NCBI GenBank assembly: GCA_002269645.1
Contig: NIVC01001294.1
Coordinates: 1 to 64,000, forward strand
Direction of reading: 5' to 3'
DNA length: 64,000 bases
Source: Macrostomum lignano
Lineage: Eukaryota
The translations under genes and the position numbers were made by a program. This document shows, one piece after another, positions 2,876 to 57,857 of this stretch. The notes under the pieces are model-generated. The model was not told the DNA's origin and ran no database searches. It saw only the letters and a list, made by a program, of their open reading frames with translations. How positions within the stretch are numbered: position 1 is the first letter of the stretch; each line of letters opens with the position of its first letter.

Positions 2876-3251
2876 AGATACCGACGATTAAGTTCATTAA
2901 ATAATACTTTAAAAAATTTAAACCTGAATGTAAAATGACACTAAAACCTGCTCAGGAAGATTTTAGTCTCCTTAGAATTTAGTTATCACTTGTGTGATTA
3001 CCTTGGCAGTGTCGTAGGGTTGTTTAAAAAGATTTGGCAGCCCCATTACCCTCTATTCAGGTAGATACAATTATCTTTCTTAAATGCCTACTTCATCCAT
3101 AATGGCTAATCCTTCGTCTTAAAATAATAATTTGTTTGATTCTCGAATATTTGGGTATTGCCTTAAGCTGCAGGGAATTGCAGGGAATCCTCATTAAGCT
3201 CCATTAAGGGGATTGCTGAGATGTCAGGCTTATGGGGGGATTGCTGACATA

Positions 3252-3410
3252 CATGCGCAACCTCTGAAATTACACTGGCCGTGTGACTTAGTTTTCTATC
3301 AAAAAATGCGACGTACCCATGAAAGAAAGCTAAGAAAATAAACGTACTTTTAGGTAAACAGCAGGAGTAACTATCACCTTATTTTTAAGGCTAAATGCCT
3401 CGCCAGCTAG
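3252..3410 (+). mobile_element. Partial MITE with TA|CATGCGCAAC terminus, same family as 57057-57314
   Basis: Aligns by eye to the reverse complement of 57164-57316 (TACATGCGCAAC...TACACTGGCC...AAAATGCGAC...GGTAAAC.GCAGGAGTAA...AAATGCCTCG). The other end was not found. Confidence 0.7.
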
Positions 3411-4399
3411 TTTTTTTACATAGTCTGTGCAGATTGTTTTAACAGCTAATCACTATGCCCTCTAGTGGCGGCCTGTGAGACAATTTGTAAATTGTCTTAA
3501 TACACTGTAGTGAGCATACACAGTACTACACAAGTCATGATTCTTGAATGCCTAGAAGTAAAAGTGAGGTGAATACAGTATGATACAATTCACAACGTAT
3601 TCACCAATAGCTCAAGAATAATTCCACTTGCTAGATGATTTGGCATGGAAGATGAGAGTCCTGATTTAGATGGCTCATCAGATGCAGGATACGAATCCAG
3701 TAGAATAGTAGAATCCAGTATAATAATAATTCCAAGTCTGCTTTACAATGATCCTAGGTCTAGTTTTCAATGGTTTTAAGTTGTTAAAAATCCCACTTAT
3801 GGTTTTCAATTAGATAAAGTTAGGTTTACCCACATATACCATAGTTAATTAGACTGTGCAATACAATACAACTAACTCATTTTTGTATTAAAATCACTGT
3901 ATATGCCTTTCCAAGAGAAAGAGAGATAGTGTTTTCAGAGCTTTTTAGAAGTTTGCATATATTTGAAGTGCAGACTTTTCCATCTCTATAGAATTACTGG
4001 CTAGCATTTCCATTTAATACAATTTCAAGTATAAGATTAAATTCATAAGCTAAAAAGATCTATTTAAGTTAGAGAAGCACTATGCAACTCACTGCTAGTT
4101 TTCTAGAATTCTTCTAGTTAGCAACCTTGTTTGGCCTCTGGTATAATAGGTGAATAATCTAGCTTTTATGTTTTTTCTTTATAAAATGGAGCAATCCCTT
4201 TGAAAGATGTCAATAATAATACTATATTGCAAAAATTTGATTGAATGATTCAAGTCAGAAGAAAATCTATTCATGTGTTCTTTTTCTTATTAATTTCCAC
4301 CGTGGCTACATTGGCTTAACCTTCAGTCTATAAAAGTTTTACTTTAAGGCTGGAAGTGCTTTTTATTCTAGGCTAGAATATTTTTCTTCACTAATTCTT

Positions 4400-17860: not shown

Positions 17861-17934
17861 AGAATCTATAATTTTAGGCACAAATACAGTTTAAATGTAG
17901 CATTTCCTGATACTACTTGACTTTCTTGATCCGT

Positions 17935-22706: not shown

Positions 22707-23445
22707 ACCGGATCGCGTTTGTGGCATCCGATTGATTGCATCGATTAAATAAAGGGAGCACGAGAATCGACCGCAGACGAATTGCCACTTGAGAGATGCC
22801 CCCAATGCTTATAAAGTCTTAGTAGCTAAGGAGACTTAGGGGGACATAGCGACGTTACATTTGTATGTAGCTCGTATTTATAACTCACCGATGTACATGA
22901 ACCGCTCGGCTTCTATATATATATAGAAATGAAAACCTCTCCCACAAGAAAAATGCTTTGATAAGCCGTTATTTACTAGCGTACCGGAACGTTTTGATTA
23001 GGTTAATCGATTTATTAAAATTTACTAAGTGTTGGAGGCTAAATTCATTGAAGAAGAAAACCATGGCGGGAAAATCTCAGCGGGCAAATCTGGACGGGCA
23101 ATTTGTCTGCACGTGACATGCCAGTGGATTAGAGGGATTGGGAATTCGCTAGCTTTGCTCACAATCATCTACTGAATGTCTCACACGCAGTGAGACACTG
23201 CGTGTGTACTGAATATAGTTTATTGATAAAAAGAAATCAGTCACATGATATCTGTTAGAACGACTTTAAGTCCAGTGTTAAGGAAGTTTGGAACAAGCAA
23301 ATTGTTGTTTCAATGATTAAATCTTGACGTGTCCTATAACTCTACTCACACGAGGTATTCTTGAATCAAATGCGACTATGGTACAAAAATTGATGACACG
23401 CATTGACGGTGCTCAACAACAGCAAGCAAGCTTTGTCAGAAAGAA

Positions 23446-26400
23446 TCACACCATGGCTGAACGACTCGTTTCAGTTACAGCTAAAGAAATAGCAGAAGTT
23501 TCAGGACAAGTATCAGAAGGTACATTCCGGTCTTGAAGCTGAGGGCCCTGTCGTTGAACAAAACCACGGTAGAGATCGCCAATCAGCTCAGAGGTGAACA
23601 GTTCGCCAGCATTGATCAGTATCATGTGCAGCAAGAACAGCCCGTTTGTACCAAGAAAGTTGCTGTCAAGGCTGCGCAGAGTGCGGCGCTTCTGGAAAAT
23701 TCGGCAAAGCAACTTGCATTGCTTTTCTTCTACGAGTGTAGGAGAAGTGCCTGCGGGCTTTCCCGGTGCTTTCAGTTGTCAAATTCTCAAATTGCTCTCA
23801 AACTGTTTCTGGAGTCTGAAGACAGTGTTCGTGTTGGTAGTGCTTGTGCTGTACCTGAGGACTGCACTTTGATGATTGCGCTGTGTCTGAGGACTGTAAA
23901 TGAATGATGTTGCTGTGTCGGGGACTGTTAGTTAATGACTTACTGACTTAATGTTAACGAATGGTTTTACCTTTTTATTGTATTGATAAAGAAAACCGGC
24001 TTGATTTGTCTAAGACAGGGTCGGCTGGCTCTTTTACATCAAAATCATGGCTGTGGGACAGCTGAGAGAGGAAAGGAGAAGGAATGGAAAATGGGAGATG
24101 AGAGAAGAGGAGGGGCGAGAGATGGGTTGAGAGAAGAGGTAAGAGGAGAGAAGAGGGGAGACAGGTAAGAGAAGAGAAGAGGGGTGATGAGAGAGAAGAG
24201 GGGAGAAAGGCGAAGAGAAGAGAAGAGAAGAGGAGACGAGAGAGGAGAGAAGAGAGAGAGCTGAGAAGAGACAGAAACCTTGAGCGGGCCGGATTGCTAT
24301 CGTGAAGTTTCAAAGGACCCGAGGGCCGGATAGAGAGGCTACACGGGCTGCAGGTGGCCCGCTAGCCGCAGTTTGCCGACCCCTGGTTTAACACCACACA
24401 ATCACCTCAAGCAGATATTTCCAGACAGCTTACATGCTTTTTATAATCGCTATTGATATTGCCAGCGACGCAACACTTGTCAATTGAAGCGAACTTGGCC
24501 AAAAATCGGTAACGACAAACCGTCAAGCGGTAGATCCACAACAACAGGCTGAGAGTGCAGATCGCCAGCACAATGGGCAGGTAGATGCTAAGCAGCAGGG
24601 CCACCTTTTCCGTTAGCACGTTGGTTGATATGGTGCAGAATGCGACAATCGACTGCAAGTGAGTGAGCGCCTGGTACTGCAGCTTGCAGATGCCGACACT
24701 TGAAGCAGGGAATTAAAGATAATCTGATTTTAATTCAAACGGAATTCCATGTTTAAAACCAAGCAGCACAGATAATCTCTTATTTGGTGTCTAATGCTCA
24801 TGTCATGCCACCAATTACAGACTCCGCGGTAGATAAAGTAGTCTCAAGTCTCACCTTGGAAAAGCTGTTTCTTCCCAATGCGACCACGCGGTCAGGTCGA
24901 GCCCAAAAAATTGACGTAGAATTATGAGCTGAAAGTGCGAAGTGAAACAATGAAGTTAACTAATACAATGAAATAGTAGGTTTTGAATGAGCTGAAAGTG
25001 CGAAGTGAAACAATGAAGTTAACTAATACAATGAAATAGTAGGTTTTGAATGAGCTGAAAGTGCGAAGTGAAACAATGAAGTTAACTAATACAATGAAAT
25101 AGTAGGTTTTGAATGAGCTGAAAGTGCGAAGTGAAACAATGAAGTTAACTAATACAATGAAATAGTAGGTTTTGAATGAGCTGAAAGTGCGAAGTGAAAC
25201 AATGAAGTTAACTAATACAATGAAATAGTAGGTTTTGAATGAGCTGAAAGTGCGAAGTGAAACAGTGAAGTTAACTAATACAATGAAATAGTAGGTTTTG
25301 AATGAGCTGAAAGTGCGAAGTGAAACAGTGAAGTTAACTAATACAATGAAATAGTAGGTTTTGAACGACTTCAGTCACCAGCCTCGTTAGTCTTTCCTTC
25401 AAGTACAGTACCATCTTGAAATCAGATCTGCACTGTTGTGCCGGGGTGCATCTGCGCTGCTTACCCAGAGCTTAGCCGGCTAGAACAGATATATATTTTG
25501 GCGTGTGCGACAGTATGGGAGGCCACCTCCGTGCCGACCTGCAGGGCTCAGCGTACTATTGTTTCATTAAACGAGCGAAAATCAGTCTGGAATTCACGAC
25601 ATTCTCTACCAGAGTGGAGAGACCTCCCCTACCGCCGCCACTGCCACGGCTGTATTGAAGTTCAAAGAGTGAGTCGCGTATCTTGTTTTTTGCGGGTCTG
25701 GCTGGGTTTGAATTGTGCCATAGGGACGGGCTGACAAAGTCTCTTGACGTGATTCCACGCGCGGAGTCAGCAGTCAGGCCGGCCAGCTGACTGACACCAC
25801 CTCCGTGCTCGTCGGAACTAGAGTTACGATCAGGCCTATCGCAACAGTACTCAAATCTATAGACCTTTTGAGCTCACCTGGAGTACAACATTGGCCATTC
25901 CAATCAGTTTCACCAGCAGGTAGGAAGGTAGCAAAGTGATTGACCAGCGACAGTCCGCGCGCTTCTGCTTGCACTGCATGCAGCAACATCTCCCGCAGCG
26001 GAAGCAGCAGGAGCAGCCGCCGTTGAGCGTTCGCCGCATCACGTCGGCTACCGTGGTCACCTCGTCGCGCCGCCAAGCTCTGTCTCGATGGGCGGAGCCG
26101 CGCACCAGACGGAGCAGCTCGGCCGGGTCGACGCCGAGTCCGCCGAAGCTGGCGAGGTCCCACAGCAGCTTGGGCAGGTGGGCCAGGATTGCCAGCGCGG
26201 CCAGCAGTAGAGGCACCCACATGTAGTAGTCTGAGTGCGGTTTGGGTAATTGTGTAGTAGCCAATGGTAAAACTGGAGATAACTACTGGTGTACCATAGT
26301 TGACTGCCAACCAACCCACCCTATCCTATATTTTCAGCAGTCCAATTCACAAAGTACCCTGAGCCCCGCTAGGCACGCACTTATCTGGGGCAAATCGCGC

Positions 26401-26699
26401 CACTCCTGCTCGTCGTCCGGAACTGGCTTATCCGGATGGAACAGGCGCAGTCCCTGCACCCAGCAGAATCCCTCGAGCATGCTCTCGTCCTGGTAATCAA
26501 TGTGAAAAGTCTTGTGCGGCGCCATGCAGGCCAGAGGCTTTGAGAACAGTTCACGCAGGCCGATGCACAGTGAGCAGGAGAGCAGCACTACAGGCGTGAG
26601 CAGGTAACTGACTTTGTCGGCAAAGTCCAGCACCCCTGTGGCGTCAATAATGTTGAATGACTTCAGCTGCTTTAGGAGGATGTTGATGAAGGTCAGCAT
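23446..26699 (-). CDS. inx: Innexin (gap-junction/hemichannel protein), ~418 aa, 5 exons
   Basis: Exons 26699-26381, 26230-25878, 24928-24855, 24698-24434 and 23691-23446; phases 1,0,2,0 close exactly (1257 nt). YYMWVP (YYQWV motif), paired extracellular cysteines, FPSVGIC, TNVLTEKV, NGLFLLHMILINAG. The last acceptor is less certain. Confidence 0.92.
24016..24385 (-). mobile_element. hAT-type MITE with GA-rich core in innexin intron 4
   Basis: Ends CAGGGTCGGC...GTTTGCCGACCCCTG; flanks GTCTAAGA/GTTTAACA (imperfect 8-bp TSD); about 90 bp shared with 52118-52220. Confidence 0.7.
24924..25365. repeat. Seven tandem 63-bp units spanning the 3' splice site of innexin intron 2
   Basis: Units start at 24924, 24987, 25050, 25113, 25176, 25239 and 25302; identical except an A/G variant in the last two. 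Confidence 0.97.
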
Positions 26700-27563
26700 G
26701 TTGTCTGTGTGGTTGCGTATCGCCTAAATCAATGCTCTGTTGCTGAAGGTGATAAGCTATGAGCTGGACAGCATACTTTTTGTCAGTGATAAATGAGGTA
26801 TCTATATAGTTTTTTTGAGGACAGACATTGGCCAATGCTTACTAAAACAACAATTGGCTACATCTAATCATCAAACATGCGTGTTAACAGGTAAAAAGTA
26901 GCAAAATTACTCTTCGATGATGCCCATGCCATGAAAACTATTTGCTCCAACTGAGGGCACGATAATGCAACTTTCGTTTTGCTACTTTCTTACCCCAGCA
27001 GCAAATTTTCTAATAATGTAACCCATAACAGCTCCACAGTAATGGCGGCTTCATGCGACAGGAGAGCCGCTTTGTTGTGATTAGAAGTGCCTGAACTGAA
27101 CGTCAAGTCCTCTTGTTTAGGGTAGATGCTAAAAAGCCTATCAAAATAATTTGAAGAAAAGCAAAATTCAAGCAGCGTGAACAAAAACTTCACAAAAATA
27201 AGTTTGTATTTAAATTTTTATTACGCCATAAAGAGATGGAAAGAAATTATTGCTCGAACTAATATTGAGTAATTTGCAATTTCAGGCAAGGTCTGTCCCT
27301 TTATTCAAAATATACTTAGCAGCAAAGACCCCAGATTAACGCTTTCACGTGGTCAGCTGCCCCAAAAGTTCATCAAGCGGTTGGTGATCATGATGCCACG
27401 ACGAGTAACGGTACTTTTGCGGTTCCTTCACACGTGACTCATCAATGATGCTGCTTCACTTCTGCGCCACGTGACAGCTCGAGTTAGAAGGGGTTTTGCT
27501 GTTACTGGGTGTAACCTTCTCGATGGCTTCAATCCATTGTGCGGCTCCTCAAGTTGAAACCGC

Positions 27564-29189
27564 TCAGTCAAGCAGCTGAAACCGGACGCCCACTGCCGGT
27601 GGCTTGTTGCAACTGCCGGTTTCGTTAACATTTCGCGGCACAGTCGAGCTGTTGAGAAGCGGAGGCAGCCTGCTGGGATGTCCGACTGCCTGATGCTGCA
27701 TACGCAGCATGGGCAGGTCATGATGCTGCAACCAGCTGCCACCGCCGCCATTGCCGCTGCCGTTTTGCATGCTCCGCGATGTGAGCTTGGCCACCGCGTC
27801 GTTAGCCAGCTTCTTCAGGTGGATGAGTTCGGGTTTGGTGCATTTTAAATCGAGAGAATTAACACAAGCCCCAGATGTTTGATAGATCTGATCAATTGTG
27901 AGCTATCAAGCCGTCACTGCAGCCTATCCTATTACCTGTACGTGGCTGTACTTCTAAAGCCCATTACGGATGAAGGAACATACACGTATGAATGAAAGGC
28001 TGTGACGCCCTCAGCCCCTGACTACATGGGATAACAGGTTATAGTTTTAATGTGGTTTCATAGCTGTCACACCTGGTTTTGGACCAGTCCTCTGTCGTAG
28101 GCCGCAAAAGAAGTCTGGCTGACACTGCCGCCGTCGGTCTGGTCGATCGACGAACTCCAGCTGGCGTCCATGAGCAGCCGCGACGTGTCGCGCATTGGCG
28201 GATAAACAAACGGCCGGCCGTACTTCTCCGGCCGATAGTCGCGGCGGTAGACGCTGAGATCGGCAGCTCGGTCGTCACTCTGCTGTTAGAAAAGTTCGTA
28301 GTTTCATCAAATAATAATAATTTATAATTTATTACACCTGCCCTAATAGGCAGATGTAGCTCGTACAACCAACAGCTCAGCCGCAGCTATTGCTCAGGCG
28401 CATCTGAAGGCTGCGTACGGCTGTTCAGTCCAAGGACTGAAGGGTCGCCACACACCTTCAGTTACTCCAGCTAATACTGGTACCCATTTTACAGCTAGGT
28501 GAACTGAAACAGTGCAAAGTTGTTCCAAAGTTGTCACAAATTGTTCGATTGGAATCGGGAATCGAACACCCAAATTTCCAGTCGTGAGCCCGACGCTCTA
28601 ACTACTAGTCTCCGACCCCCTCATCAAAAGAAGCTTATTAACTCGAGCAGCTCGTTGCAGGCAGCTTCAGTTTGAATACTAATTAGGACAGCCCAGCAGC
28701 TGTGCATGGAAACAAACTAATGCAATGCAAAGCAAAGCGAAAGTTTGCCTCCTGTTCATACGTGACAAACATGCGTCGCTTTGACCGCAAACGTACGAGT
28801 GCCCAGCCTATACGTACATGTGCGCGCATAAAAAGCCAAGAACTTCATGGTCCTTTCAGAGAATTACAGCTATCCCTACAGCTTACCAGCCACACAGGTC
28901 GCAATGACCGACCAGGTGGTAGCTTAGGAGCTATCGGCTTTGACAGAGACACGGGTGACGGCGACAACAGTTGAGGCAATGGCTTCACACTGGCTTGCTG
29001 CTGCTGCTTCTGTTTCTGCTTCGATTTAGGTCGTTTCCGGTGCTGCCTGATCGTTGAAAAATTTCGTTGGCCGTCCAGCGGTTGGCCGTCGGCCAAGCTG
29101 AAGCTGCTAATCCAGTGCGCGTGCCAGGGACAGAAGGACGACCGGGCCTGGCCACCAGTTGGTCGAGGAAATCTGGGCTCGCTCAGCAT
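27564..29189 (-). CDS. Hypothetical protein, ~278 aa, 3 exons
   Basis: Exons 29189-28887, 28282-28073 and 27887-27564, all phase 0 with GT-AG; GC/CpG-rich, coding-like composition; contains SVYRRDY. No family recognised. Confidence 0.55.
28385..28620 (-). mobile_element. tRNA-derived SINE with conserved central domain
   Basis: Minus strand: A-box-like CTAGTAGTTAGAGCG, B box GTTCGATTCC, then TTCACCTAGCTGTAAAATGGGTACC, which resembles CORE/Meta-type SINE domains. Confidence 0.7.
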
Positions 29190-30333
29190 GCCGGCTACCC
29201 TTAGCTATTTTATGTAGATGATGAATTAGGGCGTGAGCTGCGACGAACTGTGATTTTTTGGAAACCGATTGCACATCTTTATTCTGCATTAAGTCACTGA
29301 CAGGTACATGCAGTGTTAAATACCCATGCACACATACGCTCGTAAAACACTCTGAGAAATCTCAATCAAGGATCAATGAAGACAAGGAGGTATATACTTG
29401 CAAATACCTTAAGGCTTAGTTTCCGGTTCAGTTCAAACGCATTTGAAAGTAGCTAGCTGAAACTATACATGTATTTCGCTCGCAAATTTACGCGATGAAG
29501 GCTGGCGATCACTTAACAATCATACCGAAAGAGGAATTTCCTTTTTACTCTGATCAACTCAAGTCGCCAATCTGTGGCTGCTTGAAAGGCGCGTGCACCA
29601 AAAGCAGGCAAATAACACTTCGAAGCAGCACTCTATAAAGCAGCCAAAAATTTTGGAGGACCGCGTGGGTCATTTCGCCCATATACGAGTACACATAATA
29701 ACAGCACGTACAAGCGTACCAGACGTACAACTTACAGATACGAGCGTATAAGTTACTCGAAGTGATGAATTTCCTCAACAATGTAGATTGCCACAATTCA
29801 GTTCAAACTTCTTATTCCTTGGTGCCTACCATCCTCGAGTAAGGCCCTTTTTGAGAGCGCAAAGCAAATCCATTGTGTGCGCCTTGCGTTGCCATGGGCA
29901 ACAATCACTGTGGTGAATTGCAGTTAACATGCATCCCGCATTAGACACTCCATTCAGACAGTCCTGACAGGAGGACAAAGAAGTCCCGTCTAGCTGTTTA
30001 AGTGCAGCCACATACGACGCAGCCTTCTAGTGAATTAATTTACAACACAGAACAGGAAAAAGTCTTCAAGTTGCACAAAGAACTCACATGATGACTGATG
30101 AGTGAAAAGGTGCGTAACAATGCGCAATGCGACAATGCATGCAATACAGTGGAATAAACTCCAGTCAGGTAAAGGTGAGTCCATGAAGATCCGCACCCGT
30201 GGCGTTAGTAAAGCGACATACACTGCCCTCGCGGCACGGTGAATTCCTCCAGGGTACAAATTTTATGCGGAAGCGAGAGTTTAAAGGAAACGACCAGAAA
30301 ATTGACTCGCAAAATCATTCGGCATCTGCTTTT

Positions 30334-30586
30334 TGTGACATAGTGACACGATGAACTTTGCTATAGGTTGCATGCACTGTAGTGTTGACTCACTAGCAGT
30401 GGAGTTGTTATTGATCGGCTTAGAGATTGTATTTTATTCCACCCCACCCCATGCGCGCGTTTGAATCTGTCTGCACCCACCACCTCAGTGCTAAATAATA
30501 AATGTGAACAGCCTAGCTCTCAAACGAGCACCTTTTACTCACTCCTGCAATTCCACATTTCTGCCTCGCTTAACAAAGTCATCACA
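30334..30586 (+). repeat. 5' LTR
   Basis: Direct repeat of 32859-33111. Confidence 0.97.
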
Positions 30587-32836
30587 ATGGCGACGAGTCT
30601 GCCCACGCTGGGCCAACTGCTACCATCTACAAACATCGAGATCTTCCTAGAGCGTCTCGAGCAGTACTTCATCTGCAAGGAGGTGAAGGATGAGGCAAAA
30701 GTGGCAACTCTGATCACGTCGATTGGAGAGGAGGCTTACATCACACTGCGGAGTCTGTGCCAGCCGGTCCAAGTGGCGCAGAAGTCTTACGCTGACCTGA
30801 AGAAGCTGCTGACAACGCACTTCGCACCCAAGCCTTCGGAGCTAGCTGCGAGGTTCCGTTTCCAACAACGAACTCAGCAAGCAGGCGAGAGCTTCACGGC
30901 ATTCATCGCGGGGCTCCAGGCTCTGTCAGCTGACTGCAATTTCGGTGAGTCGCTAAATGAGCGGCTCCGAGACCAACTCGTGTTCGGCCTTCGAAGCGAC
31001 GCCTATCGAGCCAAGCTGCTGGAAGTCGTTGAGCCGACTTTCGAATCCCTGCAAACAAAGGCTATGTCGCTGGAGTCTGCAGAGCGTTCGTCCCTGGAGA
31101 TGTCACAAAGGGCATCGGAGTCTGTTGCCAATCTGCAATTTGTCAGCAAGAGAGGTAGCCGCAAGCAGGTGACACCCTCAGCGCACCACAGAGGGCATCG
31201 GGTCAGCGGCAGCGACAACGGCGGCAGCGGCAACGGCGGCAGCGGCAACGGCAGCGGCAACGGCAGCGGCAACGGTGGCGGTGGCAGCTCATGCAAAAGC
31301 TGTGGCGGTTCCCACGAGCGTCATTCATGCAAGTTCAGGGACGCCAAGTGCCATGCATGCGGCAAGGTCGGCCATATCCGCAAGGTCTGCCAGTCCACCA
31401 AGCAGGCCAAGCTACACATGTTACAAGAGGAGCGGATGGCACCTACTGTCGAAGGCGCGTGTGACACCCAGGTGCCCATCTTCGCAGTCCGACCAACAGG
31501 CAGAAACGCTGGACCGACAGTCATGCTGCTCGTCAACGGCCAGGAATGCCAGTTTGTCATCGACACCGGCTCTGCAGTCACGCTGATGCCGCAGCAGCTG
31601 CAGCAGAAGTTGCTCCCTCTGCTACAACTGGCTCCATCGGCTGCAGTGCTGCGAACCTTCACCAATGAACGCTTTCATCCGCGAGGCCAAGCCACAGTCT
31701 GCGTCCAGCACAACGCCCAGCAGCTACAGCTACCGCTGCTTGTAGTCGACAAAGGAGACACGGCACTGCTGGGACGAGACTGGCTGGCTCACCTTGGGCT
31801 GGACTGGCCGACAATAATGGCCCAGGTGCACGCAGTGTCCACCGATTACGACATCAGCGACCTGCATGAAAGATTCGCTGCGGTGTTCGAGAACCGACTT
31901 GGCAAATTTCGACACAATCAAGGCTCCGCCCCGGTACAGCCATGGCCATTCCCGACTGAGCCATGGGAGCGGTTGCACATCGACTACGCGGGACCTGTGG
32001 ACGGCCGCACTTACCTGGTCCTGGTCGACGCGCACAGCAAGTGGCCAGAGGTGCACAGGATGAGCAGCACCACTGCAACTGCGACGATCAGCTGCCTGCG
32101 AGAAATCTTCGCTCGTCTCGGCCTACCGAGAACCTTGGTGTCGGACAACGGGCCACAATTCGCTTCGGCCGAGTTCGCTGAGTTCGTCAGTTCCAACGGC
32201 ATCCGGCACATCTTCTCGGCGCCATTCCACCCGGCGACCAACGGCCAGGCCGAGCGCTTCGTCCAGGTGCTGAAGTGGCATCTGAGTAAGTGCGGTCACT
32301 CCGACGCGCAACTTCAACGACTGCTTATGGCCTATCGCAACACTCCGCACAGCGTCAGTGGCACCGCGCCGAGTCAGCTGCTCATTGGCCGCCAGCTGCG
32401 CAGCCGGCTGGACCTCCTGACACCATCGTTGACTTCGGCCATGCAACAGCGACAGCAGCATCAGCTTCAGCAGCAGCGGCCAGCGCGCCAGTTCCAGCCT
32501 GGAGATCGTGTGCTCTACCGCGATTTCAGCACTGCTGCTCGTGCAGGAGAAAGCAGCCGCTGGGCCGAAGGTGTCATTGTCAATGCCGGCACTCGCAACT
32601 GCACAGTCGATTCTGGGCGCGGCGTACAAGCGCGACACGCTGACCAGCTGCTGGCGGCTCCTGCTGGGTTGGCCGAGTCGAATAGCAGCACAACCCCGGC
32701 CGAGGACTGCGCGGCACCTGACGCTGGCGGCACGCCAGCCTCGCCGCAGGCAGACACGGCTGACTCTGCTAACGAGGCACCCCGGCGCTACCCGACTCGA
32801 GTTCGAGCACCACCTGACAGATTGATGCTGCAGTGA
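30587..32836 (+). CDS. Gag-protease-integrase(core) polyprotein, 749 aa, no RT/RNase H
   Basis: Gag with CCHC knuckle (CHACGKVGHIRKVC); aspartic protease (VIDTGS); integrase DDE (HIDYAG, VSDNG, AERFV) and GPY/F-like tail. ATG placed immediately after the LTR. Confidence 0.92.
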   Translation: MATSLPTLGQLLPSTNIEIFLERLEQYFICKEVKDEAKVATLITSIGEEAYITLRSLCQPVQVAQKSYADLKKLLTTHFAPKPSELAARFRFQQRTQQAGESFTAFIAGLQALSADCNFGESLNERLRDQLVFGLRSDAYRAKLLEVVEPTFESLQTKAMSLESAERSSLEMSQRASESVANLQFVSKRGSRKQVTPSAHHRGHRVSGSDNGGSGNGGSGNGSGNGSGNGGGGSSCKSCGGSHERHSCKFRDAKCHACGKVGHIRKVCQSTKQAKLHMLQEERMAPTVEGACDTQVPIFAVRPTGRNAGPTVMLLVNGQECQFVIDTGSAVTLMPQQLQQKLLPLLQLAPSAAVLRTFTNERFHPRGQATVCVQHNAQQLQLPLLVVDKGDTALLGRDWLAHLGLDWPTIMAQVHAVSTDYDISDLHERFAAVFENRLGKFRHNQGSAPVQPWPFPTEPWERLHIDYAGPVDGRTYLVLVDAHSKWPEVHRMSSTTATATISCLREIFARLGLPRTLVSDNGPQFASAEFAEFVSSNGIRHIFSAPFHPATNGQAERFVQVLKWHLSKCGHSDAQLQRLLMAYRNTPHSVSGTAPSQLLIGRQLRSRLDLLTPSLTSAMQQRQQHQLQQQRPARQFQPGDRVLYRDFSTAARAGESSRWAEGVIVNAGTRNCTVDSGRGVQARHADQLLAAPAGLAESNSSTTPAEDCAAPDAGGTPASPQADTADSANEAPRRYPTRVRAPPDRLMLQ

Positions 32837-32858
32837 GGGTGTTAACTAAGGGGGGAGA

Positions 32859-33111
32859 TGTGACATAGTGACACGATGAACTTTGCTATAGGTTGCATGC
32901 ACTGTAGTGTTGACTCACTAGCAGTGGAGTTGTTATTGATCGGCTTAGAGATTGTATTTTATTCCACCCCACCCCATGCGCGCGTTTGAATCTGTCTGCA
33001 CCCACCACCTCAGTGCTAAATAATAAATGTGAACAGCCTAGCTCTCAAACGAGCACCTTTTACTCACTCCTGCAATTTCACATTTCTGCCTCGCTTAACA
33101 AAGTCATCACA
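32859..33111 (+). repeat. 3' LTR
   Basis: Direct repeat of 30334-30586. Confidence 0.97.
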
Positions 33112-33319: not shown

Positions 33320-35075
33320 GGATACAGACCGACCGACAATTGTATCAGACTCAGACCGACCATTATATCAGACGTAGACCGACCATTATATCTGGACGTA
33401 GACCGACCATTATATCAGACACAGATCGACCATTATTTCAGGACACAGACCGACCATTATATCTGGACGTAGACCGACCATTATATCTGGACGTAGACCG
33501 ACCATTATATCAGACACAGATCGACCATTATATTAGGACACAGACTATTAATTCAGGACACAGACCGACTATTATTTCAGGACACAGACCTAGGCATTCC
33601 AATCCAGGGATCTCGGGATTTAGCCTCAAAACACGGGATTTCAATCCCGGGATTTTTTGGGACTTGAAATTTCGGGATTTATGATCCTCGGGATTACAAC
33701 AGTGCGGGATTGGGATCCTGGGATTGTAAGGCTTTAATCCCGGGATTGTTTCGGGATTCAAACTGATTTTAATTCTCTTTTTTTCAACTAAAATAATCAT
33801 GTAAAATTTGAAAAAAGTTTCAACTTTAAAAAATATGAAATAATACAAATGCAGCCTGCATGTCTGTATCGAAATCACACATAAAAAGCAGCAAAATTTG
33901 TTAGAGCAGTTTGTTAAGCAGAAATTTAATGTTTTTCGTTTTCGTAATGTGTAATTTAATTTCACATGTTCGTCAGTTGCGTGATGTCTAACACTGTAAC
34001 GTGGCATTAACATGACATTCACTTTGATAATTTACACTGATATTGCATAGCTAGCTATATAACCTATATTAAAACAAGTTATTATTGTTGTAATCAATTA
34101 TTATCAATTATCTTTTATTGATAAATATTATTTATTATTATCAAGCAATTTTCTACTTCTACTTGTACAATAACTAAGCAAAGAGAAGTTTATTGCATAA
34201 ATATACCAGTTTGGACCATTAGCTATCATTATAAATATCATAATTATACTTTGTGGTCGTGGTGGAAGCTGGATGCAGATGTTTCAATACATTTGATATC
34301 GGGATCCCGGGATTTTTTTGAACTTCGAAGCGGGATCCCGGGATTACTCTCAGTCGGGATTTTCCAGGATTAGTGATCCCGGGATTTTAAACCATCGGGA
34401 TTTCAAGATGTCTCAATCCCGGGATTGTAAATTGTCGGGATTTAGGAATCCCTACACAGACCGACTATTATTTCAGGACACAGACCGACTATTATTTCAG
34501 GACACAGACCGACTATTATATCAGGACACAGACCGATCATTATATCAGGACACAGACCGACTATTATATCAGGACACAGACCGACCATTATATCAGGACA
34601 CAGACCGACCATTATATCAGGACACAGACCGACCGTTATATCAGGACACAGACCGACCGTTATATCAGGACACAGACCGACCGTTATATTAGGACACAGA
34701 CCGACCATTATATCAGGACACAGACCGACCATTATATCAGGACACAGACCGACCGTTATATCAGGACACAGACCGACCGTTATATTAGGACACAGACCGA
34801 CCATTATATCAGGACACAGACCGACCATTATATCAGGACACAGACCGACCATTATATCAGGACACAGACCGACCATTATATCAGGACACAGACCGATCAT
34901 TATATCAGGACACAGACCGACCATTACATGTATATCAGGACATAGATCAACCATTACCGGCTTTTCCCTTTTATATCAAGACACAGTTGGTCCATTATAT
35001 CAGACTCAGACCAACCATTGTAACAGGATACAAAGATCAACCATTACCGGTATATCAATCAGGACACAGACCAGC
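33320..35075. repeat. 24-bp minisatellite (ATCAGGACACAGACCGACCATTAT)n interrupted by a MITE
   Basis: Clear 24-bp period at 34460-34940; more divergent units at both edges. Confidence 0.95.
33591..34454. mobile_element. hAT-type MITE (864 bp) with CGGGAT/ATCCCG subterminal repeats
   Basis: Perfect 8-bp TSD CACAGACC (33583-33590 and 34455-34462); imperfect TIRs TAGG(C/G)ATTCC. Confidence 0.88.
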
Positions 35076-35571
35076 CAAGGGACTCTTAGCAACATTTAAA
35101 ACAAATGAGTTTATATTTTGCAAATAACAGAGACGAAATAACAAAAACGAAATGAATCATTTAATGTTTAACTTTGAATCTGAAATTAAAAATTCACTAA
35201 TGCAATAGAAACAGAAACTGTAGATTTAAGAATGTACCGAGTCATGTATTTGATTAAATCAAACTTAACAGGACAATAAATCTGAATTGAAGAGAACAAT
35301 CGCATGGGCTAAAATTCTGCAATTATGTACTACACTGGGAGAATCAAGCACGTGTCAGAGAGAGAATAAGACTGAAACCAGGCACTAAAGCGAATGTTTG
35401 AGCACTGACTGGATTCGAAAAAAATTGCATTCGGGAACAAAAACCTAAGTCAATGAACTCGCACTTAATTAGAGCACTAATAAGCACACACTATTACTAA
35501 TTAAATAGTAGTATTCAAGACATGACATTGAACTCATGTTCAATAAAATATTAGCGCAACACTGTCACAGT

Positions 35572-38500
35572 TCACAGCACATACTTGTAGATCAGATAGG
35601 CTGCCAGAAGTACGCCAATCGGGATGATGAAGCCAGTCCAGGAGCCGCCGTTGCCGCTGGCTCCGGCACCCTTGGACTCGGGACCAACAGCTGTTAGGCT
35701 GCTTTTCTTTTCCTTCTCGAGCACCTCGCCAATGAGGTACTTTTCCATCATCTCGCGCGCATCGGTGGAATGGCCGACATCTTCGAATGCCTCGGTGGAA
35801 TAGCCGCCACCTTGTTCGAGAATCACCTCCTCGCCGCCAGGATGCTTGGAATGGGTTGATGGAGATCTCAGATAATATATAAAAACTAGAACGGTAAATT
35901 AATACCTTTGCTGCCTGCTCAGACTAGTGCTACAGCCTATTCTCTCAGAGTAACTGGCTGTACAATCTAGCAAAATGTCTATTTAACAAAGGTATTTTCA
36001 ACTAACTAAAAAGCTAAGGCCTTAGAGACAAATATGGATATGAGATTTCTCAGTCTATAGACTACTTTGCATATTTAAAGGCCATAGAGCATTCTATACA
36101 ATGGCTATATATATATAGCTTTGTACAGAAATTGCAATTCATTTTTGCATTACAAAATAAACTAGAAAATTATGAAGTGCAAACATTTGCACATGCTAGT
36201 TGCCTTATAAAAAACATTTATAGTGCTTGTTTTAAAAAATGTAGGCTTTATTTTAGTATAGTTTCTAACTAAATAGGCCTATATATAGCTCTATAAGAGT
36301 TAGAAATCTGAAAAACAGATAACAGGACAACAAAGGAGCCAGAGCTAAAAGTAGACACAAGTTCAACTGGCACTAGCAGGAATGATGAGGAAAGCCCTAC
36401 CCAGTCATCCATTGAAGTGAGAAATCTGGCCTAGACAAGCAAGAACTGGCCCAGAGGGACAAAAGTCTTGGTTGGCTACAATCCCCAGTTTATGACAACA
36501 GCAGGAAGGCAAGAGGGACCTGGGGACGGCCTGGACAGATCGAGGAAGGCCCAGACCCTGCACAAAGATGGCCAGAAGAGGCTGATAAGGAAAAGTAACA
36601 CTAGACCTAATGTGCAGAAGGGAATAGAAATGGGGACTGGGATAGAACAAATTGGGGTTGCATCCCCACTTTTCACTAAATAAAAAGAGGAGTGGTCGAG
36701 CGGAGCACAATTTTGTGCTACTTCCTTCCTTCCTGCCAGGCTCAAGGCTTACTTTGATGCAATAGAATATATTAACCAATACTTTGTATTAAACAACTCA
36801 CTTGACTAAACTCTGGCAGCTCAGATTTACTTAAGACTAGCCATCTCATTTAGGCATAGCTAGTTAAATAGTAGGATATACAGTTATAATCTCCATAGTG
36901 CACCTAGATTGCAACTAGGCTAGACCTTATACCAAACCCATACCAAGTTACACGCCATGGTCAGAAAGGTGGCACAGTGTGCGCCAGAATAATTTTTTGG
37001 GACAATTTGTGCGCTGTCTATGCGACATTTATGCACCATTTGTGCATTGTCTGTGCGCCGTCTGTGTGCCACTCTTCACAAGTAGAGTTTTCTAAGAAAG
37101 GCCTTTGTACAAAAAGTCTTAAAAATCTTATGCATATTTTCATTTTAAACAAACTTAAATTATACCTACAAATAGAATAATGTAAAATTGACCTTCTTAG
37201 CGATAATTTATACTAATTTTATTTACTGTTAATTTTAAAGAAGCAAAAAGTTTAGCACTGACTTTCTAGACTATACAAATCTCAGCAATAGTGCAGTTTC
37301 ATTCGCGAAATTATTTTTCATTTAAATTTGAAAGTTCAAAACCAGAAAACAATAACAATAATAAAAATTGATGTTTTAAACCATTCTAACGATTTTGGCA
37401 GAGTTTTTAGCTCCCTGGTTGCCAAACTTTCCAACTTGTCATTGTGTTCTAGTGGCAGATACAGAGCTTGTCACTGGGCACTGTAGTGGTGGCGAATCCA
37501 GAAAAGCATGTTTCCAAAAGCTCTGTTTGCTCCAAACAGTCAGCGCCACATAAACTCCTAGATGTGGCTCTTGAAGAGGGCATTGCTTGTTCCATGCATG
37601 GCCCTGAATTTGGCTTTGCAATGCGCCCACATTCCCTTAATTGTGTTGGTATGGAAAGTCGCACCATTTGGGTCCACGAAATGGAGTCGATGGTTCACGA
37701 CACCGTGGTCTCCATGGCCACCAACTACATTCGCCACTTGGTTGTAGGCTTGCCAACCATCAGTCAAGATCCGTGTGCCAAGCAGGACAAACTGCTAGAT
37801 TATAGGAAACAGTGTCTGAGCAGACCTGTTGGGCACAACAACCATCACACACTTGGGGCTACCCCTTTCTACCATGCCAAGGACCCAATGACCCTCACAG
37901 TATGCACCCTGCTAGTATTTGCGATGAAAAAATTTGCTTTCATCGATTTCAATAGTAGTGCTAGGTCCACCAAGTTGCATTGGGTGGTCAATGAAATACT
38001 GGCAGCAAATGTCCCTGACAAAGTTGAGCCAGTCCACGGCCATATGATCGCTAACGCAACATTTGTGCATCACTGCCATCTTGGTCTCATTCCTAGCCCA
38101 GCAGTACAGCAAGGTGACAAGCTGCTGCAGTGTCAGATGACTACGCTTGAAGAAAGAGTCCTTCCTGATGCTTTGCTGACTGCGGCAAGTCTTGCAGTCC
38201 TTCTACGCAGCCATCTACGAAGCGCGACACTGCAGGTTCATGGGGGTCTGGGCTAGATAGGAGCATGTATGTTGGTTGCCGATAAGCCCAACCTTGGCCA
38301 TCCAGCGCATTGTATCCTCTAGCGTTGCCGTGGCAACCATCAGGTTGCACACATTTAGCTCTAGTTGCAATAGAGCATTCTTTGGCAACACTTCATTCAG
38401 CGGAATTATCCACGAGGGTCTTGGTGGTCGTCTAGCCATGATACAATATGTTGTCCAAAAGAAAAAGCAGATATTAGCAGCTTCTCAGCTAAAGGGAAAC

Positions 38501-39815
38501 AGTTCAAGCCCCCCTTACTTGAGCCCCTTTCAATTTTTTAAACTATTTTTTTCCATAGACAAGTTGCGTTTCAAGTAGCATTTGAGTGTGGCACAGATTT
38601 AATGAAAAAGTATATTAATAGAGCGCCCATTTGCTTTAAAGTTCCGTGACTAGTGAGCACTGGCACAGTCACTAGAATGGTTTAAAACATTGTTGTTATT
38701 GTTTTCTGCTTTCGAACTTTCAAATTTAAAGAAAAATTAATTTCGCGAACGAAACTGCACTATTGCCCAAATCTCCTTTATTTTACATAAAATTGTTAAT
38801 TTGCATTACAATTTTCATGCATATAAGGGACCTTATATGCTGCAATTATGCGCCACATGCGCTAGGAACCTCAGTGTGTGCTATGATTGTGCACTGCATG
38901 CGCCAGGGACCTTAGTGTGCACCATGGTTGTGTGCCAAATGCCCCAAGGACCCCTTGTGTACGCTGGAATTTTCTATGGCAAAGGCCACCTTCCTGACTA
39001 TGGGTTACACGTAAAGTATAGGAGCTTATAAGCTCAAAGCCAACTATAAGAGCATGAGAAATGGAAGTTCCAGGCTCTAAGATAAGGAGATTTTTCATAG
39101 GGATTGATTTTGTCAACCTAAACTTGAATAAAGACATAGAGACCTATTCAAGATTAGGTATTTATATATATTATTTAGTCTATAAAAATAATAAATAATT
39201 ATAGATATTAAATACATATAGTTAAGCTAACAAAGTCTATAGAGTTCAACAAAAAACAGCAGCACTTTGTTTTGCATTTCTTACATTATATTTTTATATT
39301 GGATGCCTAGTGTTTATTAAAAATTTTCAAACTAAACCTAAAAAATTATAATTTTGTTTTTGATTTTAATATCTAATAATGACTTTATAATAGTTAGATA
39401 TAATAGATAAACCTAGGTGAAATCTATTTTTTACTTAAAATAATTTTTAGGCCCCTGTATTTTTTCAATAGCTAGCTCTTTCAATTAGGTCTTAAACTTG
39501 AAGTGTTTTGATATGACATTTATTGTTGGCTAAAATAACTATGAGCTGAGCAATGATAATTTCTGTTCTTATTTTTAATCTTAGGCCTACTCCCAAATGT
39601 GACTGTGACATTTAGATTTATCTTTTTAATTTCGATAGGCCTAGTATCATATCATCTAGTCCTACTCATGATTCATGAATAATTTCCAAAAATGGTCTTA
39701 CCTCTGTTAGAAATTTTGTAACATCATAGACTTTGTCATGTATTATGATCCAACAGCTCTCTGGTGTTTTGTGTTCCTCAACTTCTTTTTTGGATATCTG
39801 GCGCAAGATGGACAT
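35572..39815 (-). CDS. CYB5: Cytochrome b5, tail-anchored, 128 aa, 2 exons
   Basis: Exon 39815-39702 ([38 protein letters not shown]) joins exon 35844-35572 (HPGGEEV...[11 protein letters not shown]...C-terminal TM); both heme-ligand His present; phase 0. Confidence 0.93.
36950..37283 (+). repeat. Copy B of the 7400-7930 family, interrupted by the Merlin element and resuming at 38776-38830
   Basis: TTCACAAGTAGAGTTTTCTAAGAAAGG...AAACAAACTT matches copies A and C. Confidence 0.75.
37284..38767 (-). mobile_element. Full-length Merlin (IS1016/ISXO2-like) DNA transposon, inactivated, in the cytochrome b5 intron
   Basis: 8-bp TSD CAAATCTC (37276-37283 and 38768-38775); ~100-bp TIRs starting (G/A)GCAATAGTGCAGTTTC; motifs [38 protein letters not shown]; internal stops. 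Confidence 0.93.
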
Positions 39816-42034
39816 TTTTTTGCAAAACAATAGAAGTAAGGTTAGTTATGAATTATGATATTCGCTAGCTTTAGCCTACAGAAATGCTGTACACTAGCTA
39901 GAATTAAGGCTGCAGGAAAAGGTAAGTATTTCTCTTACAAAGTACAATGGCAAATGCAAAAATACTGTATTGAAAAACACACCCGATTATAATAAATGGA
40001 ATGGAATACTTTAATTTTTAAAGAACACGTAACTCGTTCTTCATCTAAAATTTGCGAAACGTAGTGGTCGAGTGATTTTAAAATAGCACATATTTAGGAA
40101 ACGTAAAATAAAATGTGTAAGTTTTTAGAAGTGTTGGAGTACTTTTAATACAATTGCTGAAAGCATAAAAATGAGAAATAAATTTTACTGCAAAGAAAAT
40201 AACTATCACGTTATGCTTTGTTTTTCTATACTTTTTTCACATTAATATTAACTTTAATCTAACCTTAAAAGCTGCTTGCAAGCTATAAGTCATTCAGCAG
40301 CTTAAGGTCCTCATTAGTACTTACGAAAGTCGTGGGGTTCAAACTTGGCGTAATAAAAAAGACCACTCTGGACTTTCACATAAGAAAATCTCGTACACAT
40401 GTATAATTTTTTTACCACTTGCAGCTTAGCTATTACACTTTACAAAATAGAAAGTTTTTACTTGTATTTGCTCTTTTGTTGATGATTTTTATGTGATCTA
40501 CAGCTTTTAAACCATTTAATGCGATGAAATAGATGGTGTTGCTTTGCTTTGTAATTTCCATTTTTAGTTTATCGTAAAGAAGAGATTTAATGGAATGAAG
40601 GCTAGCGTGATGTTTTAAAACTCTAATAGTACAATCTGTACAATTTGTAGCAATTGCATATACTTGACCAGCCAAATGGAATTATTTAAATTCTCCACAA
40701 CGGCGCAACAGGTCGCTTGGACGGATCAGGCAGGTGTGAGTGGCGATAGAGTGGCCGTATGGTATTTGCATGGTAACTCGCTCACCACCAATCTACTGCA
40801 TGTACATTTAGATCTTGCTCTTGGAACGCAGAACGCAGCAGGGCCAGCGTCGCCATGTCAACATCATGCTGTTTGAGGTTGTTTCAGCGTCAAGTCTCTA
40901 GTGCTCTTGGGTCAGGACGTTTTAGGCCGGCAGGATGATCTCGATCGCGTACATAATGTATAGTTAGCTGCATGGAACTAACGCAGTCCTAACAGCTGTA
41001 CTCTATATTGGATGTCTGGTAGGGCCTCGGACTGCAGTCAGGACTGCAACCCTCACAGAAAGAAAAGCAGCCCAGGTGGTACATGTACAAGTACAAGTAA
41101 GCCCCTCTCCGGCGGACGCCACAGGTCCTTGTGGGTGGGGCGTTGAACCAGACCGAGGACGAACTGCTGCCAACGCGACCTTCGATCTGTACTAATTATT
41201 TTCCGTCAGTAAATAAAAGCCTCGATGTCGTCCATCACGTAAAACACAATTTATTACAGTCTTCCGCGGCACAATAACTGTCGCAACAATAACCAGTCTG
41301 TCCAGGCCAGCTGTCGGTGGGGCGTCAAGCGCGCTGATCGCTGTTGTCTTTCCACTGGGCGTCGATCCACGCGACACAAAAAATTAAACGGAAAAATTGA
41401 CTGCTTGTAAAAATGATGAATGATGATTAAAATGTATAATCTTACATGTACAATAAGAAGTGTAAAATATTTATTATATTAAAAATAATATTTATTATCT
41501 ATATAATAATAAATAATATTATCATATTATACTATTTGTTTCCTTTATTATATTTCTATATTTATATTAATAGAGCTTTTTGTCTCGAAAATTCGGATTC
41601 TTTAATTCTGAATGTACATCATGCGTACATGTCCTGCGCCCAAAAACCATAAACTTTTTTTACAGAATGTTAACTAATATCGAGCTAGTTATAACAAACG
41701 CTATAAAGATCAACAATCATTTTTGTGCTTAAAAACGAAAACCTTCATTCTCGTAATGTACGATTTTTCAATCTGCGTTCTAAAATTTTTCACGAAATGT
41801 AGTTTCCCGTCATTTTAATTAAGTACTCCTTGGCTCGTACATCTCTATAAAATGCCATCACACAGTAAAGGCTGAGGCTGTTTCTGTAAGAGGGTTGAAA
41901 AATCGTTTCAAATAACCTTCAGATTAACAAAACAGGGCGGAACGACACCCTTTAGATTTTTAGCTCTTTTTTATAACTACGCTCGTAATTAATTGATTTC
42001 GAACACTTCAGCTCGGATAGTTTTGAAATGAGAG

Positions 42035-56689: not shown

Positions 56690-57650
56690 AGGGCGCATGA
56701 CCAAGATAGCCACATACTAAGATAGCCACAGCTCTAAATGTCTAAATAGATAATAATAAACCTTGGTCTATATATTCAATTTATTTCCTACTAGTAGCAA
56801 TTTTTATTAGGTGTAGATCTCCAAGTCTTGGAGAGAGATAGATGCTATTATAATGGAATTATATTATATGATAAACATTCTCTTCAGCTTTGGCTTCAAT
56901 TGTAGCCTGACCTATAGATATTTATCCACTAAATAATATAAATAGTCTAGTATAAAATAAAACCCTATTGCATATTTATTACATTTTTTTGCACAGCATT
57001 ACCATTATCAATGATTTCTTGATAAACTGATAATAATAGATTTGATAGATATCATACATGCGCAACTGCTGGCCGACCTGGCCGATCTGGCCACCGTAAA
57101 TTGTGGTGGACCAGGGGTAAGTCGCAAAAATTCCCAGCCTGAAGAATACGGACATAGTACTAATTAGATGACGAGGCATTTATACCTTATAAGACAGTCA
57201 TAATTACTCCTGCCGTTTACCCAAAATTGCGTTAGGGTTTCTTTTACAGGTAAGTCGCATTTTTGGTCAAAAAGTAAGTCGCATGGCCAGTGTAAATCAG
57301 GGGGGTTGCGCATGTATAATAGATATAATGATGGGGGCCTAAGGAAAAATGGCATAAACATTGAAAAAGATTAGTTTTTATATTATAGATAATTATTAGT
57401 TTCAAATCTTAGATTGATTTTTAAATTAATATTTTATAAATATGATTAATTAAACATAAAAATTAATAACAATATCCATATACTAAAAATGGTCTATTGG
57501 TAGGTATGTATGTGATTAATTTTAGAAAAAATAATAATAGCTATAAGTTGCAAATTAATAATGAAAAGAGAAAAGGTATAATAATAAACATTCAATGTTG
57601 TGGCCATCTTGGTATGTGGCTATCTTGTTCTTATATCAGCATAAGGCCCT
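56690..57650. mobile_element. Eroded MITE with AAGATAGCCACA subterminal inverted repeats
   Basis: CCAAGATAGCCACATACTAAGATAGCCACA at ~56701 is inverted at ~57599-57628; exact ends not resolved. Confidence 0.55.
57057..57314. mobile_element. 258-bp MITE, TA|CATGCGCAAC...GTTGCGCATG|TA
   Basis: Perfect 10-bp TIR, TA on both flanks, three internal GTAAGTCGCA motifs; retains CpGs. Confidence 0.85.
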
Positions 57651-57857
57651 ATGCTATAGAAGGTTAAAGATCTTTAATAAATAAGTTTTTTATAGACCTA
57701 GACTAAAACATAAGATAAGAGAAAATTTTATGTTCTAAAGGATCTTAAAAAAACTTAACAAAAATTCTATTATATTTAAAACAAGGTATTTTGTAAAATG
57801 AATTGGATTTATACTAGGCTTTACACCTTTATCTTAGGTCTAACAAAAGGCTAAGAC

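Follow-up and report, generated by a model that had tools for sequence, protein, structure and literature searches.

Excision footprints of transposable elements are textbook knowledge, usually observed singly and in genetic revertants. Tc1/mariner/IS630 transposases insert at TA only and duplicate the TA; they cleave exactly at the 3' ends of the element and 2-3 nucleotides (nt) inside its 5' ends, and once the donor is repaired by end joining, the nucleotides of the overhangs stay behind between two TAs, as for ISY100, whose re-ligated donor carries the predicted TATATA junction (PMC2170065, PMC3878927, PMC2874221). The TA target-site duplication is characteristic of IS630/Tc1/mariner (PMC2170065). 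Here, we analysed the first 64 kb of Macrostomum lignano contig NIVC01001294.1 (GCA_002269645.1, Mlig_3_7), hereafter the window, whose coordinates are those of the contig. In this window, one unit of a 24-bp satellite array carries an exact 6-bp insertion at TA with TA duplication, such inserts recur, their presence or absence differs between paralogous copies, and one family of TA-flanked elements ends in CATG. We regard the resulting palindromic octamers, TACATGTA (TA-CATG-TA) and TAGGCCTA (TA-GGCC-TA), as probable non-functional scars of IS630/Tc1/mariner-type excision. The support for this reading is good in the case of TACATGTA, from which it extends to TAGGCCTA.

Most loci of the M. lignano assembly exist as three paralogous copies (S, L1, L2) following a recent genome duplication (PMC10733133), which makes these copies the key resource for testing the octamer finding. 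Two paralogous loci, NIVC01002009.1 (L003) and NIVC01000566.1 (L004), were found through the 90%-identity cluster of a cytochrome b5 gene; both can be aligned with window positions 21.1-52 kb (88-96% identity), and the two agree with one another at 99.1-99.9%, with no informative indels between them. A second, independent paralogue pair (L005/L006) was obtained through another cytochrome b5 gene. For window positions 52-64 kb, a protein search for paralogues with a 276-aa exon gave no match, nor did a reconstructed 1070-aa gene model in the protein collection searched, and comparison of the window with itself yielded too few internal repeats for a presence/absence test. Our literature search found the general mechanism of footprint formation documented (PMC2170065, PMC3878927, PMC2874221), but not TACATGTA as a described Tc1 footprint, and nothing specific on genome-wide footprint enrichment or on M. 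lignano DNA transposons.

Insertions at TA in a 24-bp satellite array

The satellite has the consensus ACACAGACCGACCATTATATCAGG (19.7 copies, 96% identity) and counts 31+, 38 and 14 units in the three paralogues. It is interrupted by an 863-bp transposon in the window (33591-34453) and unbroken in L003 and L004. The features of this region are as follows.

33331-33590, plus strand: first part of the 24-bp array (empty-site series); in L003 and L004 it runs on into the second part without a break
34454-35090, plus strand: second part of the array, with 19 regular units, the insertion-bearing unit and a degenerate 3' tail kept in the paralogues
34925..34932, unstranded: TACATGTA, duplicated TA plus CATG, an exact 6-bp insertion of CATGTA (34927-34932) in one 24-bp unit
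34955..34973, unstranded: TA-CCGG-CTTTTCCCTTT-TA, where sister unit 34940 has 17 nt inserted at the same TA, a variant found in all three paralogues
35045..35052, unstranded: TACCGGTA, with CCGGTA inserted into a terminal unit that is degenerate; old and common to the paralogues
35572-35844, minus strand: cytochrome b5 gene adjoining the array, used to reach L003 and L004

The unit starting at 34910 is 30 bp long and reads ACACAGACCGACCAT-TA-CATG-TA-TATCAGG, otherwise following the consensus. Its empty site, ...CCATTA------TATCAGG, is found in about 19 neighbouring units and in L003 and L004, where the positional orthologue, which immediately precedes the conserved degenerate tail, is an unaltered ACACAGACCGACCATTATATCAGG unit with a clean 6-bp gap opposite CATGTA. 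The first-pass annotation had placed CCAT at 34921 and 35041, followed by TACATGTA at 34925 and TACCGGTA at 35045, and these coordinates and readings are exact; the neighbouring units serve as the empty-site controls it took them for, to which L003 and L004 add paralogous ones, and against both the change at 34925 is indeed a duplicated TA plus a 4-nt palindrome. Because the TA is single in both paralogues and in the neighbouring units, 34925 is a young insertion at TA with duplication of the TA, and because both sets of controls are empty, its polarity is fixed as an insertion specific to the window lineage. The placement of the 6-bp gap slides by 2 nt at 34925, as it does at 35045, because of the TA.

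Ordinary repair of double-strand breaks, adding filler or templated DNA or slipping, could also insert six nucleotides that are palindromic by chance, with no transposon involved. However, a random 6-nt insertion forms a 4-nt palindrome followed by TA with a probability of about 1/256 per event, and the insert copies no adjacent bases, CATG being absent from the rest of the array and from the immediate flanks; the copying of nearby bases expected of polymerase-theta templated insertion or of tandem duplication is thus not seen.

The unit starting at 35028 reads ...GATCAACCAT-TA-CCGG-TA-TATCAATCAGG, and its counterpart in L003 and L004, CCATTGCCGGTATATCAGG, has the same insertion with one A/G difference (TTGCCGGTA there, TTACCGGTA in the window). 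Sister unit 34940, overlooked by the first-pass annotation, reads ACCAT-TA-CCGG-CTTTTCCCTTT-TA-TATCAAG and has GATCAACCATTACCGG and TATATCAA in common with unit 35028. As the degenerate tail with both CCGG-bearing units is found in all three copies, the CCGG insertion predates the divergence of the paralogues, and the derived GATCAACC and TATCAA common to both units imply that it arose once and was then copied with the unit. The octamer TACCGGTA is not enriched, with 1 occurrence in the window for 0.24-0.48 expected. Its proposed status as a second excision scar retains the TA-CCGG-TA architecture but not independence, the octamer being single, old, unenriched, in all paralogues and tied to the 34940 variant, so that the footprint reading for TACCGGTA is plausible but weak. 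It is a real possibility, which we put a little lower than its opposite, that this octamer is non-canonical and derives by deletion from a larger unrelated insertion, TA-CCGGCTTTTCCCTTT-TA, or the reverse. The CCGG insertion and other derived bases common to the sister units would fit such a derivation, as would the lack of enrichment and of a CCGG donor; nevertheless, the architecture, with a TA duplication and a 4-nt palindrome at the same TA, equals that of the demonstrated CATG and GGCC cases, and the 11-nt extra piece of unit 34940 can be a later insertion.

Recurrence of the octamers and differences between paralogues

Octamer counts were compared with those expected from Markov models of orders 1-4 in the window, with Poisson P values. 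The sites concerned are listed here.

TACATGTA, all 17 sites: 9006, 9369, 9618, 9666, 13186, 14341, 14614, 16720, 21126, 29466, 34925, 41080, 41443, 46360, 47531, 49133, 49286
29466..29473, unstranded: example of TACATGTA kept in the paralogues, as is 49286
TAGGCCTA, all 17 sites: 11552, 11904, 36274, 39582, 39636, 45334, 46482, 46860, 46899, 58615, 58926, 60011, 60039, 60051, 60606, 60656, 63130
36274..36281, unstranded: example of TAGGCCTA kept in L003 and L004, as are 39582 and 39636

Both octamers occur 17 times, for 1.0-2.6 (TACATGTA) and 0.9-1.9 (TAGGCCTA) expected (P <= 3e-9 in each case), and they are the only outliers among the 136 strand-collapsed TA-NNNN-TA words. The count against a Markov background that the first-pass annotation had proposed, run in the window, thereby returned strong enrichment for the palindromic cores CATG and GGCC (2 of 16) but not for the others, CCGG included. 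With tandem arrays masked, they rank first and third among all 8-mers, the word between them, ATCCCGGG, stemming from the subterminal repeats that the 863-bp element carries. The flank seen most often around CATG (17/255) and around GGCC (17/252) is, by a wide margin, TA..TA, while the half-words CATGTA and GGCCTA show no enrichment beyond the contribution of the full octamers. The flanks of the 34 sites are unrelated, and the recurrence of the same footprint at many unrelated TA sites is repeated in L005/L006, where TACATGTA is found 2 and 3 times (0.35 expected) and TAGGCCTA 1 and 2 times (0.12 expected). Small numbers permitting, the flanks of TAGGCCTA are symmetric, with A/G-C before and G-T after (AC-..-GT), and those of TACATGTA are A/T-rich (AT.-..-.AT; A-T-A before,.-A-T after), a pattern that a dimeric transposase with weak target preference would yield.

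Among the window octamers in aligned sequence, 5 are kept, 1 (34925) faces a 6-bp gap, 3 differ by a single substitution and 1 is complex; in the reverse direction, one octamer of L003/L004 faces a 6-bp-shorter, slightly diverged window site (~40802) and another faces TACACGTA. The independent pair adds three exact 6-bp presence/absence differences at a single TA, checked on raw sequence: TA[GGCCTA] at L005:10601 and L006:10435, and TA[CATGTA] at L006:4398. The expectation of the first-pass annotation that octamers differing between paralogues would align as 6-bp insertions at TA was borne out by four exact cases and one probable one, but not by about five single-base differences; overall, about half of the differing octamers are exact 6-bp indels at TA, and the others are single-base changes such as decay would produce at 4-12% divergence.

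Selection on functional motifs, such as palindromic protein-binding sites that the array insertions created or copied, would account for TACATGTA and TAGGCCTA being perfect palindromes, for the merely mild excess of their one-mismatch variants (47 vs 30 and 28 vs 22, respectively) and for the retention of half of the aligned sites between paralogues. However, this retention is what neutral decay predicts at the observed divergence ((1-d)^8 = 0.36-0.72), and the sites are scattered, lying within a satellite and in intergenic and intronic sequence that is AT-rich. Several are plainly present or absent between paralogues, and a binding site leaves the always-single TA of the empty allele unexplained, so that we give functional motifs hardly any credence. 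The mild one-mismatch excess suggests a mean octamer age of a few percent divergence.

Beyond the octamers, the alignment of the window with L003 and L004 contains 378 gaps, of which 19 are clean indels of 4-20 bp, 7 of these being full or partial duplications. Among the 12 non-duplication indels, 4 have TA as flanking repeat for 0.06 expected (P = 5e-7): TA[GCTA] at 22825, TA[GCTCGTA] at 28319, (A)TA[TTTAGACCAATA] at 23217 and TA[CATGTA] at 34927. Further indels of the TA-X-TA kind were recognised by inspection, namely TA-CGAG-TA at 22915, TA-CGCTCG-TA at 23030 and the window-specific TA[CGCTCGTA] at 41978. Cores that recur beside those of the octamers are X = GC, GCTCG and CGCTCG. The corresponding features and word counts are the following.

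22823..22828, unstranded: TAGCTA, window-specific 4-bp indel TA[GCTA] at a single TA
41978..41987, unstranded: TACGCTCGTA, window-specific 8-bp indel TA[CGCTCGTA] at a single TA; word plus reverse complement 3 vs 0.02 expected
TAGCTA in the window: 31 observed, 11.5 expected
TACGAGCGTA (plus reverse complement) in the window: 3 observed, 0.02 expected
TACGAGCTA (plus reverse complement) in the window: 3 observed, 0.18 expected
TAGGCCCTA / TAGGGCCTA in the window: 4 observed, 0.3 expected

At 34925, L005:10601, L006:10435, L006:4398, 22823 and 41978, the empty allele thus has one TA where the scarred allele has two. These comparisons also bear on double-strand-break repair: paralogues are separated by many kinds of small indels, as the number of gaps illustrates, these indels often being tandem duplications of 4-8 bp, and a hexamer unit has expanded at 41063-41100. 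Yet the same two inserts are found at unrelated sites, 17 times each, to which the exact indels in L005/L006 are added, only 2 of the 16 palindromic cores are enriched, and the empty allele is always a single TA. Together with the odds against a chance palindrome and the missing template at 34925, this renders repair insertions an improbable source of the octamers.

Some sites are compound. Composite chains, TA-GC-TA-GGCC-TA (45330, 63126, 60656) and (TACATG)2TA, resemble the outcome of an element re-inserting at a TA that belonged to an older scar. At 41063-41100, L003 and L004 read (TACATG)2TA and the window TACATGTA-CAAGTA-CAAGTA, which appears to be a footprint-derived hexamer expanding like a microsatellite. 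In addition, eight sites of the TA-CGAG(C)(G)-TA type lie within 7 kb at 22800-29800 (22868, 22915, 23030, 28319, 28357, 29335, 29684 and 29739), three of which exist only in L003/L004; they may be the local-hopping trail of a CGAG-ended element.

Candidate donors and neighbouring repeats

Donor elements were sought in a total of ~130 kb of M. lignano sequence by scanning for terminal inverted repeats (TIRs), using exact 10-mer seeds and scored TIRs with the heads TACA, TAGG, TACC, TACGAG and TAGC, which gave mostly false leads. One family of MITEs (miniature transposable elements with inverted repeats) emerged.

57055..57316, unstranded: candidate donor MITE, a GC-richer island of 262 bp, with TA on both sides, a perfect 10-bp TIR CATGCGCAAC...GTTGCGCATG and termini CATG...CATG
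3250..3523, minus strand: second, older copy of the CATG-ended family, whose similarity to the first copy stops at ...GTTGCGCATG-TA (...GCGCATG-TA)

The window contains the 12-mer TACATGCGCAAC at exactly three places, and the third of these (3250) is the end of the second copy. The ends of the MITE (CA..TG, or CATG) match the prediction from the TA-CATG-TA footprint. The suggestion of the first-pass annotation that the central four nucleotides record the donor termini is compatible with a TA-flanked CATG-ended family in the window, but finds no counterpart in a CC..GG or GG..CC element. A CGAG-ended element was likewise absent from the ~130 kb, and a Pfam scan of 18 open reading frames (ORFs) detected no Tc1/mariner transposase.

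A sequence-specific source other than Tc1/mariner, be it a different superfamily, a domesticated transposase or nuclease that acts at TA, or short terminal remnants left after internal deletion, is an unlikely alternative that we nevertheless rate above repair insertions and functional motifs. The superfamily is deduced from the TA duplication only, GGCC and CCGG donors were not found, two pairs of TACATGTA sites match over 10-11 extra nt on one side, in the manner of element ends, and the hAT-like element within the array has TAGG...CCTA termini. Against these points, the 8-bp or 3-bp duplications expected of hAT or PIF/Harbinger remnants occur at 1 of the 34 sites, and this one (46899) is a tandem duplication, with no other direct repeat of 8 bp (nor of 3, 4, 5 or 9 bp) around the octamers. 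For PIF/Harbinger, with GGCC termini and a TWA target (T-TA...TA-A), the T..A outer flanks are not enriched, those of TAGGCCTA being C in 7/17 and G in 9/17 cases. Finally, empty alleles hold a single TA, TA duplication is the hallmark of IS630/Tc1/mariner (PMC2170065), and the CATG-ended family of the window is TA-flanked.

Several candidates were discarded during the scans. The TA-flanked TIR suspected at 56707-57622 (GCCACATAC...) belongs to an inverted repeat that extends past the TA; 56980-60399 is merely a 14-nt T-rich match; the pair 60656/63137 consists of two composite footprints matching only because they are palindromes; L004:731-1612 is located at a rearrangement junction; and a 3.2-kb TIR element (44297-47513) proved not to be TA-flanked, its empty site in L004 showing a 3-bp TTC target duplication. 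This last element has termini CCAGTAAAAAAGGG and TCGGAAT subterminal repeats, and contains five octamer sites.

The region hosts other mobile elements. The 863-bp element splitting the array is non-autonomous and hAT-like, and absent from L003 and L004. Its TIR is TAGG(C/G)ATTCC, its target duplication (CACAGACC) is 8 bp long, and it has numerous subterminal repeats of the form CGGGATT / ATCCCGGGAT, the word ATCCCGGG occurring 13 times for 0.5 expected. A 1.48-kb element (37285-38766) with ~117-bp TIRs, 91% complementary, and an 8-bp duplication CAAATCTC lies within a 2.1-kb window-specific segment (36937-39021), and its 262-aa ORF has no Pfam match. An internally deleted long terminal repeat (LTR) retrotransposon (30334-33111), with near-identical 253-bp LTRs and a gag-protease-integrase ORF without reverse transcriptase, is present in the window copy only, and L003 alone has another, different LTR element of 5.4 kb, whose 300-bp LTRs are identical (L003:2085-7498). 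On the minus strand at ~16900-20300, broken ORFs with reverse-transcriptase and GIY-YIG endonuclease domains correspond to a Penelope-like retroelement. Other tandem arrays or repeats (1-741; 24924-25365; 49638-50464; 52237-52805; 54503-54980) include units of 30 bp, 63 bp (7 copies, 99% identity), 14/21 bp and 19 bp, and a Q-rich 21-bp coding repeat lies within a YLPM1-like P-loop gene (51167-55561, minus strand). A 527-bp piece of this gene (51512-52038) is 99% identical to L004:1057-1583, where it lies within an 810-bp insertion ~2.5 kb off the expected collinear position, as either a small rearrangement or an assembly artefact.

Origin of the octamers and comparison with known systems

Several observations weigh against excision as the source of the octamers. 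With a fifth-order background, their excess is only ~2-fold, although this background is largely built from the octamers themselves. The TACATGTA pairs 29466/14341 and 41443/9666 match over 10-11 further nt on one side only (TACATGTATTTYGCTCGCA and TACATGTASAATAAGAAG), too alike for chance and not predicted by a bare footprint. TA-flanked elements with GG..CC, GGCC or CCGG termini were absent from the ~130 kb scanned, and TACCGGTA is unenriched and has its 17-nt sister variant. The Tc1/mariner family published for M. lignano (DD37E/MS) has 35 copies, a TA target-site duplication and CTGGG termini (PMC10379824 supplement), and these termini predict TACTAGTA, of which 3 are observed for ~0.9 expected. 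Polarity is proven in the array only: elsewhere, for want of an outgroup, an insertion and a precise 6-bp deletion are indistinguishable. Lastly, no occupied allele, with an element at an octamer TA in a paralogue, was present among the large paralogue indels, which is weak evidence given that just 3+2 paralogous copies were compared.

We nonetheless favour excision, by a route that we infer from the structure of the scars as regards the element formerly at each site, its superfamily and the size of its stagger. An element of the IS630/Tc1/mariner kind would have integrated at the first TA of the TATAT core in one 24-bp unit, duplicating the TA. The transposase would later have excised it with staggered breaks, after which the flanks keep a few nucleotides of the transposon termini as 3' overhangs, and end joining would have sealed the gap into TA, terminal nucleotides and TA, the retained nucleotides being palindromic if the ends are inverted repeats. 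The self-complementary 4-nt core (CATG, GGCC, CCGG) fits either 2+2 nt or one 4-nt overhang: a 2-nt stagger on CA...TG ends would give TA-CA-TG-TA, and a 4-nt stagger on CATG...CATG ends would give self-complementary overhangs that re-anneal. The 4-nt overhang would explain why palindromic inserts (CATG, GGCC, GC) are uniform, hence highly enriched, and also why the non-palindromic CGAG series (CGAG, CGAGC, CGAGCG) is heterogeneous. Repeated excision at many TAs would then have made TACATGTA and TAGGCCTA the most over-represented non-satellite octamers in the window and TA-X-TA a dominant small-indel class between paralogous copies. In these terms, the general proposal of the first-pass annotation, that the octamers are scars of departed cut-and-paste elements, stands for TACATGTA and TAGGCCTA but is weak for TACCGGTA, and it lacks GGCC and CCGG donors.

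By extension, and tentatively, the M. lignano genome may be a dense fossil trail of excisions, written by families with self-complementary 4-mer ends that are now mostly rare or extinct. If the window were typical, TA-CATG-TA and TA-GGCC-TA would each have on the order of 10^5 copies; footprints would rank among the main causes of the small insertions that arose since the recent genome duplication, excision sites would re-anneal like restriction fragments, and the octamer spectrum would record the termini and activity history of vanished elements. The mechanism is known; what is new is the scar density in the M. lignano genome and the built-in empty-site controls offered by three paralogous copies. 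Array units and three subgenomes used as such controls could date transposon departures, and not arrivals alone, around the genome duplication, and footprints could serve to deduce the ends of lost families. The share of the small-indel load due to cut-and-paste elements could also be estimated in this regeneration model. Furthermore, such scars confound motif discovery, where they appear as palindromic 'motifs', and the CATG-ended MITE hints at an endogenous TA transposon system, possibly an active one, in an animal for which transgenesis tools are wanted.

Footprints of hAT elements, V(D)J-type recombination and Transib hairpins resemble the octamers in adding palindromic nucleotides at a repaired break. 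However, their P nucleotides are palindromic relative to the flank and the 8-bp duplication of hAT is kept, whereas here the palindrome is centred on foreign bases (CA-TG), the empty site is a single TA and a longer duplication is absent. The footprint of Minos, a Tc1-like element, is a TA with 4 terminal nucleotides (CGAG/CTCG) and a second TA, which agrees with the 4-nt overhang model; TA-CGAG-TA, TA-CGAGC-TA and TA-CGAGCG-TA words are enriched here and occur as presence/absence indels, a likeness that we treat as a lead only and that differs in the absence of a CGAG-ended element from the sequence scanned. The IS630/Tc1/mariner footprints (Tc1/Tc3, Sleeping Beauty C(A/T)GTA, ISY100 TATATA) differ from those of the window in that exactly 4 self-complementary nucleotides are found here instead of the documented staggers of 2-3 nt, that GGCC donors were not found, and that the scars top the regional octamer spectrum, for which the literature search returned no description. 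They resemble them in the TA target, its duplication, the few symmetric nucleotides in between, the same insert at unrelated sites and the presence, in this very window, of a TA-flanked TIR family with matching termini.

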